Source: Amoeboaphelidium protococcarum X5 (taxonomy: Eukaryota > Fungi > Aphelidiomycota). From it: a stretch of DNA of 64,000 bases. This document shows, one piece after another, positions 1-3,549 of this stretch. The stretch covers positions 1,757,608 to 1,821,607 of the forward strand of contig JALDTO010000266.1 in NCBI GenBank assembly GCA_023515725.1. The letters run 5' to 3'. Positions within the stretch are counted from its first letter, which is position 1. Each line of letters begins with the position of its first letter. A program made the position numbers and the translations under genes. A model generated the notes under the pieces. That model was given only the letters and a program-made list of their open reading frames with translations, was not told the DNA's origin and did no database searches.

Positions 1-2
1 TT

Positions 3-2033
3 AAGCATCCCGTGCTGTTCGATTATGATCTGGTCACGCGAACTTATAATGATCTGAAGCTTGATTGTGGCAAGAGTTCATTCTTAGTGGCCAATGATGG
101 ATTTAATATTCGGTATCGCGTATTTATGCCATAACAATCTGATGATCGAGTGTAAGCTAACGTGATTCTATTTCAAATGGATTTCAAGCTTATTCTCCCT
201 TGGCTCCTATCATGTAAACTGCCAGTAGCTGTGTACGCCGTGGAACTTCGAGGGATTGATAATTCATCTATAGTTCATAGCACAGATGTGATTTTGGGCG
301 ATATTCGGCTGTTTGTGTGTCACCTGAAATTTAATAATCCTGACATTCCACTGCTTATTGGTGGTCACGGCTTTGGTGCATCTGCCTGTATTAACTATTC
401 GAACTGGCGATATAGAGAACCTGTGAATGGCTATCTTTTCATCTCCCCGCTGATTGATTATCTATCACTCAATACTGCAGATTCTGGAATGGTGAAAACT
501 CACAATATGATCAAGCTGTACACGGTCGATGAGTAGAAGCACTGGTTTAACACTATGAGAAGTTCAGCTTCTGTTAAGTTACTCACCACATTCAATAGCG
601 CCTTAAATTCTGCTGCTGCATCCACTTAGAATTCTAATACTAATAGTCCGCTCGGTTCATTGTGTCAAATCTCTGACAGCTCATCCATCACCATCTCCTA
701 GCCGTTGTGGGGTGCGTTAACTTGTAAAAATGTCTAGTCACTCTTTGGTAATATGGAAGTCCCGTTCGGTCTGTACCTTGGCTCAGAAGATGAGCTTACG
801 TGTGCCCATTAATTTGTCAGTATGGTGGAGTAGCAGACTGATAAAGTGTACCTCAAAGATTTGCAGGTGATGAGAGGATCAAGTCATATGTCGTCACTGA
901 TCACGGCTTCTGCGCACATTGTTCCATTCATTAAAAAGTTTATCAAGATTGTGTCTCCTAAGCTGTCATTTAAGATGAGGAATCCCAAGCTATCGTAATT
1001 TGAAAAAGTCTAATTCATCGGCAGAGGGTCTTTCGGTAAGGTGTATTTGGTGCGGCACATCGAGTCTGATCGCTACTATGCCATGAAAGTCTTGAGTAAG
1101 AGTCAGATATTTAAACTCAACGAGGTGAAGCATGTCATTACTGAGCGTAATATACTCTCAGACTTGAATTCACAGTACGTGGTGTCTTTTGTCGGCTCGA
1201 TGCAAGATGGGCATAATCTGTACATTTTAATGGAGTATGTGATTGGAGGTGAATTGTTCACTCAGTTGACTCTTCGCAAATGCTTCAATGTGGATACTGC
1301 GCGATTTTATGCTGCGGAAGTTGTCTTATTTCTGGAACATATGCACAGTAACTAGATTATTTATCGTGATATTAAACCAGAGAATATTCTGATTGATGCT
1401 ATGGGACATATAAAGTTTACAGATTTTGGATTTGCCAAGTATTTGCGCAAACGGACGTTCACCTTTTGTGGCACTCCGCAGTATATGGCTCCTGAGATTA
1501 TCATAAATGCTGAACTGGGCAGGAGAGGACTTGGATATTCATTCGCTGTCGATTTCTACTCTCTCGGTATCCTGATATTTGAGATGCTCGTTGGTTAGAC
1601 TCCATTTCATGACCTCAATGTGAAAGATGTGTATAGAAAGATCCTGTACGGACAAGTTGAATTCCCGTGGTCGATGGATCCTGATGCCAAAGATTTGATT
1701 AGACTTCTATTAACAAAGAATCCTAGCAAACGGCTCGGTGTCAATGGCATTGAAGAGATCAAAAATCATAAATGGTTCTAGTCTATAAACTGGGAATAGC
1801 TTAGACGGCGAGAAATTGCTCCGCCCTTCATTCCAAGATTCACACATGCTGCTGATACTAGAAATTTCATACCATGGAAAAGTGGACAAAAGAATGTACG
1901 CGGCGATGAATATGATCAAGCAGGCTTGGACACCGCATGTAACCGCGATTAGGAAGATAGTAAGAAAGTGGCAGATGACGTTGGCCAATCTAGAGAAAAT
2001 GATGATTATGGTAATGCTTTTGATCAGTTCTGA
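3..2033 (+). CDS. Alpha/beta-hydrolase-like (Hydrolase_4-type) domain fused to a PKA/PRKX-like AGC kinase catalytic domain; 5' end lies outside the window
   Basis: One frame without TGA from 3 to the TGA at 2031-2033 when TAR=Gln. Hydrolase-like motifs: [33 protein letters not shown]. Kinase motifs: [46 protein letters not shown]-terminal FDQF. Confidence 0.9.
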
Positions 2034-2091: not shown

Positions 2092-2850
2092 TCAGTCATC
2101 ATTCCATATTTCAGTTTTAGCTGCTTTGTGGCGAAATAGATCCTGAGCTATGCCTTTCACTAACCCACTGCCAACTACCGTGGGTGTTGCATATAGAACG
2201 CATCTTTAAAACATATTCAATTCTCTCCCCTAAAAATGTTAATTAACTGCCGCGGTAGATGCTATGCCAGCTAAAGACAAGCCCGCAAATTTGAAGCGTT
2301 CACACGCTCTCAACTGCTTTACTTGGCTATTATCCGGTAGAGATTGAAGAGGCCGATGTCCTTTCAGCTCCAACCATTAGTTGTACCCTACCATATCTTT
2401 CTTAGGATTAGGCATTTCTTTCAAATCTAACTAGCTAATACCGCGACCATCAAGATATTTCCCCAATTTGCGCTACTAGCTATGAGAGCGTATCGCATTC
2501 CGTACGTGTGGAGCCACCTAGACGACAACGGGAGCAATCTAGCAAATGTGCGCCACAGAAAGAGGGCGGTCCCCCTTGGCAAAGCCGCACACCTGCTACA
2601 GCGCCAAGCTCATATCTAATGCACTCAGTATACCGTATGTTTTTTTCTACTTCTTCAAGGACTAGAATCTATACGCGGCCTCACCAACATTATCAGATAT
2701 TATTGCATTATCCACTTAGGAGCAGACGTGAGCTACGGCCTATTCGCACGGCATTGAGCCAAACCAACCGTTCATCGCTGTGGGCTCTACCGCGTCAACG
2801 GAGAAGACTGTGATCAAACAGCAAATCAGCGCTAATAATTGACAATTCAT
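2092..2850 (-). CDS. Hypothetical secreted protein (~252 aa), absent from the ORF track
   Basis: ATG at 2850 to TGA at 2092-2094 with no internal TGA. The N-terminus MNCQLLALICCLITVFSVDA looks like a signal peptide. No domain recognised. Confidence 0.7.
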
Positions 2851-3549
2851 AGGTAATATTATATATGAGTTTAAACTACTGTGCGTGATTTATAAGGGAT
2901 ATATAATAATGTACGTCAAAAAAGGATAAAAAGTATGATGCATTGAGGACCTGAACAATCCGCGCGTGATTTTCAAAAAATGTCGTGGACTCGTGTCGGA
3001 TCTGATTGGTGATATGTCCAAGTTACGGCATGCATCATCACGTATTGGATGGATGAATGAATTGATGGCGCACTTTATAACTCAGAGTTTTTATGAAAAT
3101 AAATAAAACTATCTATAACACTCTTTAGTAATGCTGCTATTTTCACTTCCTATTCTGCTGCGGCAGTTCAGTGTGCCGATCGTTTTCACCGACCACTCAC
3201 ATAAAACCTGTGATGTTTGGTATGTTACGTCTTGCTTCTTGATCAAGGTAAAAATACAGTTGAAACGTATACAATGCTTGATCGATGGATTATGCACAGT
3301 GCTGTAGATGGGCATTCCTCCTTTTAGGAAACTACGGCCAACTGCTTTCCACAGAGGCACTGACCCGTTGGTCTCCTACGATTCAGTGATTGGGTGCTAT
3401 TTTAAGCCTGAATATATATTGCATAGCTAGATTATCGTACGAGCCTCGCTGCTTTCGTCTCTCCCTCCCTCCCTCTCTACCACGTCTTCTCATAACATAC
3501 TGCATATTGTCTTGATACATTTTGTTTAAATAAATAGTGCCCAATCTTC

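Follow-up and report, generated by a model that had tools for sequence, protein, structure and literature searches.

Why should a protein kinase with a full set of catalytic motifs be joined, in a single reading frame, to a lipase-like domain that lacks its nucleophile? This question is raised by the beginning of a window of DNA (the whole stretch analysed, 64,000 nucleotides; G000:C264:1757608-1821607, with window position 1 at L007:7001) from a 23.6-Mb assembly of Amoeboaphelidium protococcarum, a parasite of algae. An initial annotation of this DNA had described a two-domain fusion of an alpha/beta-hydrolase-like part and a kinase of protein kinase A (PKA) type, and had proposed that the former senses a ligand. 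We found that the gene extends upstream of the window and that its product has more parts than this: a Met-Gly (MG) start, a beta-sandwich, two tandem hydrolase-like domains that are predicted to be dead (alpha/beta-hydrolase domains 1 and 2, here ABH1 and ABH2) and the kinase, together 1182 amino acids (Table 1). The protein is an AGC kinase with a fused, probably regulatory module and a member of a conserved, uncharacterised family whose proteins are already present in public databases.

The window holds the 3' two-thirds of the gene, the start of which lies upstream and is cut off by the window edge. On the plus strand (frame 3), positions 3-2030 contain 15 in-frame TAA or TAG codons and no TGA before the one at 2031-2033. 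By a rough estimate from base composition, approximately 12 TGA codons would be expected by chance in a frame of 676 codons, and none is seen; a TGA-free frame of this length is far beyond chance. Long TGA-free frames span the whole 64-kb window on both strands, which indicates that TAA and TAG are sense codons in this genome. A second copy of the gene (its homeolog, 93% identical in DNA) is present on contig C146, and at 11 of the 34 aligned TAA/TAG sites one copy has CAA or CAG where the other has TAA or TAG. Both codons are therefore read as glutamine.

The same TGA-free frame remains open over L007:5155-9033 and continues for 1.5 kb upstream of the window. Recovery of the upstream sequence, as the initial annotation had recommended, yielded the full N-terminus, with a first ATG that opens the protein with MGNVNC; the upstream extension encodes ABH1 and the N-terminal domain. 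The full gene (G000:C264:1756035-1759640) has two exons separated by one 57-nt intron with GT..AG ends. Its spliced translation is identical to the NCBI protein P0085, which lies on an NCBI contig of 2,509,496 bp and carries no recorded name. The claim that the hydrolase-like and kinase parts form one gene, one transcript and one protein is thus borne out by the single frame, by spliced contigs (below) and by the identical NCBI protein.

The homeolog is deposited as KAI3638476.1 ('hypothetical protein MIR68_002974 [Amoeboaphelidium protococcarum]') and carries a 4-nt insertion inside the GTGAGT...TAG stretch, which is 61 nt long there and 57 nt long in our gene. This stretch was identified as an intron because both copies keep their frame only if it is spliced out. 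Splicing was also seen in contigs from four public runs (X1-X4) of one 2021 study, for which the run type is unrecorded and an origin from RNA is inferred from the spliced contigs. One X4 contig omits exactly the 57 nt, and X1-X3 contigs have letters of exon 1 attached at this same acceptor. Run contigs fill 29 of 30 bins across approximately L007:5234-9100, the only joint being the 57-nt intron, and they span both the ABH1-ABH2 junction (L007:6680-7760) and the ABH2-kinase junction (L007:7864-8067). A single transcript across the hydrolase-kinase junction, which the initial annotation had marked for checking, is therefore what these contigs show. Both gene copies appear to be expressed, since the depth of paired run contigs is similar whether they have 0-1 or 14-22 differences.

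The ratio of nonsynonymous to synonymous substitution rates (dN/dS) between the gene and its homeolog is 0.05 over 3.5 kb, the whole open reading frame (ORF). By part, it is 0.09 in the N-terminal region, 0.02 in ABH1, 0.03-0.06 in ABH2, 0.03 in the kinase and 0.07 in the tail. Changes are biased towards third codon positions in all 180-nt windows apart from the last one, which extends beyond the stop codon and has only four differences. The whole ORF is under strong purifying selection and all of the frame is coding, with the dead hydrolase domains as constrained as the kinase. Hidden in-frame introns were considered and dropped, as none was indicated by codon-position bias or by the run contigs.

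Both hydrolase-like domains are related to monoglyceride lipases. The ABH2 piece in the window (156-533) matched Pfam Hydrolase_4 with an E-value of 3.8e-6 and a score of 26.8 bits, just short of the cut-off of 27; the cluster representative P0001 (98% identical) matched it with 80.3 bits in two stretches. The elbow segment of ABH2, IPLFMWGHSMGG, can be aligned residue by residue to yeast monoglyceride lipase (4zwn), and Gly629 is assigned to the position of the nucleophile serine because this elbow aligns to the GHSMG of 4zwn. The equivalent residue of ABH1 is a tyrosine (GHYFQG, against GHGFG in ABH2). The catalytic acid is Glu in ABH1 and Asp769 in ABH2, the catalytic histidine is His461 and His801, respectively, and the HG motif of the oxyanion hole is absent from both, the aligned places reading IAAN in ABH1 and LFQM in ABH2. 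In an alignment of 11 family members (A1), ABH1 lacks the nucleophile serine in all 11 and ABH2 retains it in only two, and the acid and histidine positions are variable across the family. ABH2 is 35% identical to ABH1 (E 5e-12); besides ABH1 and the C146 copy, a search of the genome with ABH2 returned no match at E <=0.01. The nucleophile serine is retained in three canonical Hydrolase_4 genes of this genome, which score 129-171 bits.

From these comparisons, ABH1 and ABH2 are alpha/beta-hydrolase relatives that we predict to be catalytically dead in this species. The initial annotation had recognised ABH2 as such a relative that lacks both nucleophile and HG oxyanion motif, a reading that the Hydrolase_4 match and the 4zwn alignment support, and its candidate aspartate (GSED) and histidine (GSSH) are indeed kept as Asp769 and His801 in A1. 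We also considered whether GQSGG (residues 268-272 of ABH1) might be a displaced elbow. It sits in the loop after strand 4, and it was rejected because the canonical paralogues, which have their true elbow as well, likewise show a G-x-S-x-G at this place. The same region contains a loop, RGxGxSGGxRG, that is invariant together with Asp286 in 11 of 11 members although the domain is without catalytic residues (residues 262-286 of P0085; L007:6268-6342).

A structural model built with AlphaFold2 (AF2) from the 11-sequence family alignment had a mean predicted local distance difference test (pLDDT) of 69 and a predicted template modelling score (pTM) of 0.50. A beta-alpha-beta core was recovered in ABH1 and ABH2, mostly with a pLDDT of 70-93 per 10-residue block outside the lids; in ABH2 most blocks are at 70-90. 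The model places the beta-sandwich at residues 13-142. The lid regions (349-398 in ABH1 and 662-738 in ABH2) are of low confidence and predicted to be disordered, and the acidic tail of the protein is of low confidence too. The initial annotation had suggested a model of the pocket; with both lids disordered, AF2 yielded none.

The kinase domain is complete by sequence and by modelled fold, and the nearest characterised kinase appears to be the PKA catalytic subunit (PKA-C). Stop-free pieces of the frame matched Pfam Pkinase with 89 bits (1014-1352), 92 bits (1356-1595) and 23 bits (1599-1778), and P0001 matched it with 233.9 bits over profile positions 1-263. A glycine loop (GRGSFGKV), K868, E887, the HRD-type aspartate, DFG and APE are all present, and in the AF2 model the domain extends over residues 839-1107. 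PKA-C alpha was the best sequence match (298 bits, roughly 45% identity), followed by AKT2 (250 bits) and RSK2 (248 bits), and Foldseek gave TMt values of 0.84-0.86 to PKA-C, which accounted for all of its top 50 matches. The description of a complete PKA-type kinase with an activation-loop threonine (T993) and a C-terminal FxxF (FDQF) therefore holds. A C-terminal F-x-x-F is found in 8 of the 11 family members, and the DTRNF of the tail aligns to DTSNF of PKA. The PKA glutamates by which arginines of the substrate are recognised (E127, E170 and E230) are conserved in the kinase alignment. PKA W196 is replaced by Phe and E203 by Gln, and there is a seven-residue insert after APE. The genome encodes other, more canonical PKA-like kinases, which are 45-46% identical to this kinase domain, as well as tandem cyclic nucleotide monophosphate (cNMP)-binding proteins elsewhere. 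The protein is therefore an extra paralogue and is not the only PKA of the organism.

The N-terminus resembles an N-myristoylation signal, a motif in which Met-Gly opens the protein and residue 6 is small or carries a hydroxyl group. An MG start together with S, T or C at position 6 is found in seven of the 11 family members, and starts among the relatives include MGNSNS, MGNNIS, MGAEAS, MGQHSS, MGNTLT and MGVTIS. The cysteine of MGNVNC could in addition be palmitoylated. The N-terminal domain forms an immunoglobulin (Ig)-like sandwich when modelled alone (pLDDT 72) and is followed by a long helix of low confidence (residues 147-179, pLDDT <50). A Pfam scan of the N-terminal 205 residues of 13 family members gave no match. 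An ESM Atlas feature search also came back empty. With Foldseek, the beta-sandwich matched PDE6D, NPC2, RhoGDI and UNC119 at E ~1e-4 and TM 0.35-0.5. With VIA-align, the Ig domains of GH2 enzymes ranked highest (Z 10.1), ahead of RhoGDI2 (8.2) and NPC2 (8.0), and an atlas search with the beta-sandwich returned mainly GH2 Ig domains. We therefore did not assign the domain to the lipid-binding class of PDE6D, UNC119, RhoGDI and NPC2, which did not rise above generic Ig-like sandwiches in the VIA-align and atlas searches; the likeness to lipid-binding proteins in these models is at most a lead. A conserved pseudosubstrate was also sought, and two segments, RRIGI (167-171) and RRSSM (357-361), fit PKA motifs; neither is kept in the family.

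With window positions 156-533 as the query, an exhaustive HMMER run against 1.84 billion representatives returned 84 proteins at E <=0.001. Word-index searches with the full protein and with A1 returned only its own cluster and unrelated kinases and missed known relatives, and our census of the family rests on the HMMER run for this reason. Among 18 long hits that were scanned, 13 had Hydrolase_4 and Pkinase in the same order, with aphelids and an ichthyosporean among their sources. Most of these relatives are 1120-1384 amino acids long and have two hydrolase stretches. The layout is found in the aphelid Paraphelidium tribonemae and in two copies in the ichthyosporean Chromosphaera perkinsii, as well as in the NCBI assembly GCA_047514055.1 and in the Logan assemblies SRR31089926, SRR24693327, SRR14932665, SRR26181889 and ERR11523676. 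With this distribution, the protein belongs to an old, conserved kinase family that spans aphelids (Holomycota) and an ichthyosporean (Holozoa). The closest relatives that bear a name are recorded only as 'hypothetical protein' or 'putative PKA', the Paraphelidium copy being recorded as 'putative cAMP-dependent protein kinase catalytic subunit'. A search of the available literature library found no paper on the hydrolase-hydrolase-kinase layout, in line with the earlier remark that it is not known from characterised proteins.

In a tree of the individual domains, those of ABH1 are separate from those of ABH2 (2-3 label changes, compared with 8.5 in shuffles); the tandem duplication is therefore older than the family. 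The two aphelids pair in the family tree, as do the two Chromosphaera copies. The two members with an ABH2 serine, P0009 (SRR31089926, L013:3001-6660; elbow GHSFG) and P0012 (Chromosphaera perkinsii), keep Ser, Asp and His alike, and ABH2 may still be an enzyme in some lineages.

Among the relatives, SRR24693327 carries two hydrolase-hydrolase-kinase genes of 1159 and 1157 amino acids in tandem, head to tail on one contig (L014:1-4474). In two related assemblies, the kinase gene is closely followed by a small EF-hand gene in tail-to-tail orientation (L012:7079-7300 and L014:4598-4816). The two EF-hand proteins are 55% identical, and in A. protococcarum the homologue is on contigs other than that of the kinase gene (C25 and C155). 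A conserved linkage to the kinase gene was discarded, as the arrangement is confined to one clade of relatives and is not found in A. protococcarum. P0003-P0008 and other short HMMER hits are 100-560 amino acids long and 44-52% identical to ABH2; they look like fragments of this gene in other organisms with the same genetic code, cut at TAA or TAG by standard-code gene calling.

The protein shares features with several known systems. With PKA-C alpha (PDB 1atp, 2gnj), its best sequence match and its best fold match (TMt about 0.85), it has in common all catalytic motifs, the T197-equivalent threonine, the DTxNF motif of the tail and an FxxF that closes the chain. In PKA-C, an MGN start carries an N-terminal myristoyl group. 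The protein differs from PKA-C in that approximately 820 residues, made up of the beta-sandwich, the long helix and the two hydrolase-like domains, separate its MG start from its kinase; it also has the substitutions at W196 and E203, the insert after APE and a longer acidic tail. Its likeness to Hydrolase_4 monoglyceride lipases (yeast Yju3p, 4zwn; human MGLL) lies in the Pfam match, the alignable elbow region, the GxGxSxG loop after strand 4 and, in ABH2, the Asp and His positions. It differs from them in the replacement of the nucleophile serine (by Gly in ABH2 and Tyr in ABH1), in the absence of the HG oxyanion motif, in lids that are long disordered inserts, and in the tandem arrangement of the domains and their fusion to a kinase. 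Like PKG (cNMP), PKC (C1/C2) and Akt (PH), it has a regulatory module N-terminal to the AGC core in one polypeptide; unlike in these kinases, the module is a pair of alpha/beta-hydrolase pseudoenzymes. The hydrolase fold has been reused for binding and signalling, in place of catalytic turnover, in GID1, D14/KAI2, EDS1-PAD4-SAG101 and ABHD5, of which D14/KAI2 keep a working triad, unlike ABH1 and ABH2. To our knowledge, none of these proteins is fused to a kinase, and we know of no detectable sequence relationship between them and ABH1 or ABH2 beyond the fold.

What, then, might the dead domains do? We consider it probable that the protein is a lipid-anchored membrane kinase in which the dead lipase domains act as a regulatory module through a lipid-like ligand or a partner. 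The MG start would be acylated and would place the protein on a membrane, as the acylation motif suggests, and the kinase would be membrane-associated and basophilic. ABH1 and ABH2 would hydrolyse nothing and would have been retained as a module that holds the kinase or sets its position. Most likely, a lipid-like ligand would bind in what was the acyl pocket, or a partner protein would bind, and this would then control the activity or the location of the kinase, in parallel to the C1/C2, PH or cNMP domains fused to other AGC kinases. That the dead hydrolase domains sense a ligand is plausible, and the data agree just as well with a role in docking or as a scaffold. What makes lipid binding the most attractive of these readings is the combination of monoglyceride-lipase ancestry with an acylation signal. 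In its most specific form, this would be an ancient family of one-component, lipid-gated PKA-like kinases, in which a ligand resembling a monoacylglycerol, a lysolipid or a fatty acid, perhaps along with the myristate of the protein itself, binds to the dead lipase pair and thereby releases or positions the kinase; we regard this version as tentative and somewhat doubtful. The initial annotation had also suggested a sensor of host metabolites, and a role specific to a parasite of algae now seems less likely because the family also occurs in an ichthyosporean.

Several points weigh against a membrane kinase with a dead regulatory module. The match of the beta-sandwich to lipid-binding domains is no better than its match to generic Ig-like ones. 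The ancestral ABH2 may have been an enzyme, as P0009 and P0012 keep Ser, Asp and His, and the role of the module may differ by lineage. Confidence between domains is low in the AF2 model (pTM 0.50), and both lids are predicted to be disordered, so that AF2 gives no modelled pocket or docking interface. Finally, the four runs behind the transcript evidence belong to the same study, and with their type unrecorded, their RNA origin is itself inferred. In a different reading, the dead domains are docking, dimerisation or scaffold modules that sense no small molecule, and phosphorylation of the activation loop is all that controls the kinase. We see this as possible, if on the doubtful side. Surface loops of ABH1 such as RGxGxSGGxRG are invariant while the pocket-lining catalytic positions vary freely among members, the acyl-pocket lids of monoglyceride lipases are replaced by long Ser-rich inserts of low confidence, and alpha/beta-hydrolase pseudoenzymes serve as protein-protein modules in NDRG proteins and neuroligins; the acylation signal and the lipase ancestry, on the other hand, together point towards lipids.

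It is unlikely that the protein is a targeted isoform of an ordinary cAMP-PKA catalytic subunit, held by regulatory (R) subunits and using its N-terminal 838 residues only as an anchor. PKA-C is the closest kinase, the three PKA glutamates are conserved, tandem cNMP-binding proteins are encoded elsewhere in the genome and the Paraphelidium copy bears the name of a cAMP-dependent catalytic subunit. However, PKA W196, which has been linked to R-subunit binding, is Phe here and is absent from the family consensus, the segment after APE contains the seven-residue insert, and the R subunits could have the other PKA-like kinases, which are 45-46% identical, as their partners. We think it very unlikely that one or both hydrolase-like domains are still enzymes, with a non-canonical nucleophile or a different reaction. 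Asp769 and His801 are kept in ABH2, as is the full set of Ser, Asp and His in ABH2 of P0009 and P0012; in this protein, however, the nucleophile residue is Gly (ABH2) or Tyr (ABH1), both domains are missing the HG motif and the sole G-x-S-x-G of ABH1 (GQSGG) lies in the loop after strand 4. The idea that the long frame is an artefact of adjacent genes, or of an assembly join, that happen to share a frame has only the ease of TAA/TAG read-through in this genome in its favour. It is already refuted by the co-linear layout on independent assemblies of at least 10 other sources, by run contigs that cross both domain junctions, by a codon-position bias that is uniform along the ORF and by the identical NCBI gene model.

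AGC kinases are usually understood through their fused module (PH, C1/C2 or cNMP), a part that is taken here by two lipase pseudoenzymes. Should lipids bind to the dead domains of the proposed membrane kinase, these domains would form a new direct link from lipid metabolites to PKA-type signalling and a clean model for the transition from enzyme to receptor. If the kinase is in fact lipid-gated, this would be an unrecognised mode of AGC kinase regulation and would place lipase pseudoenzymes as receptors outside plants. The relatives with a full ABH2 triad offer a natural comparison of active and dead forms. Aphelids consume algal cells, and the kinase could matter for signalling during infection stages.

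Table 1. Positions of the gene parts, protein domains and key residues. Residues are those of the 1182-residue product and window positions are in nucleotides.
Feature	Residues	Window position	Strand	Other coordinates	Basis
Start ATG			+	G000:C264:1756035 (L007:5428)	Upstream frame
Exon 1			+	G000:C264:1756035-1756092	Splice joint
Intron, 57 nt, GT..AG			+	G000:C264:1756093-1756149	Joint in run contigs
Exon 2 start			+	G000:C264:1756150	Splice joint
N-terminal Ig-like beta-sandwich	13-145		+		AF2
ABH1	205-482		+	L007:6097-6930	54.9 bits to Hydrolase_4, read through
ABH1 elbow GHYFQG	307-312		+		Tyr at nucleophile position
ABH1-ABH2 linker (its end in the window)	483-508	1-8	+		Upstream frame
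ABH2, monoglyceride-lipase-like alpha/beta-hydrolase domain	509-823	9-953	+		Pfam Hydrolase_4, AF2
HG oxyanion-hole position of ABH2, reads F-Q-M		171-179	+		Sequence, alignment A1
ABH2 nucleophile elbow G-H-G-F-G		363-377	+		Alignment to 4zwn GHSMG elbow; family alignment
Nucleophile position of ABH2 (Gly)	629	369-371	+		Alignment to 4zwn
Kept acid of former triad (Asp, GSEDE)	769	789-791	+		Alignment A1
Kept histidine of former triad (GSSHM)	801	885-887	+		Alignment A1
PKA-like AGC kinase domain	839-1098	999-1778	+		Pkinase, PKA-C alignment, Foldseek
Lysine K868	868	1086-1088	+		Kinase motif
Aspartate D962	962	1368-1370	+		Kinase motif
Aspartate D980 of DFG	980	1422-1424	+		Kinase motif
Activation loop		1452-1478	+		HMMER alignment to 2gnj
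T993, PKA T197 equivalent	993	1461-1463	+		HMMER alignment to 2gnj
AGC C-terminal tail with DTRNF	1099-1182	1779-2033	+		PKA tail alignment to residue 334
Terminal hydrophobic motif FDQF	last four	2019-2030	+		Sequence
TGA stop		2031-2033	+		Sequence

A few further observations concern the surroundings of the gene and its copies. Downstream, a TGA-free frame of 329 codons on the minus strand (window 2095-3081) runs towards the kinase gene, and its stop codon is only about 60 nt away from that of the kinase gene. Upstream, a (GA)n microsatellite lies approximately 200 nt before the start codon (L007:5198-5230; G000:C264:1755805-1755837). It is 18 nt shorter in the C146 homeolog, and the RNA-derived contigs start just downstream of it. 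Every gene that we looked up in this assembly is present as a pair with roughly 93% DNA identity. At a single site (L007:5390), the run contigs contain three distinct 4-nt insertions (TATT, GATT and AATT), and the gene is represented at NCBI by four protein variants from four contigs. This indicates that several haplotypes or strains exist.

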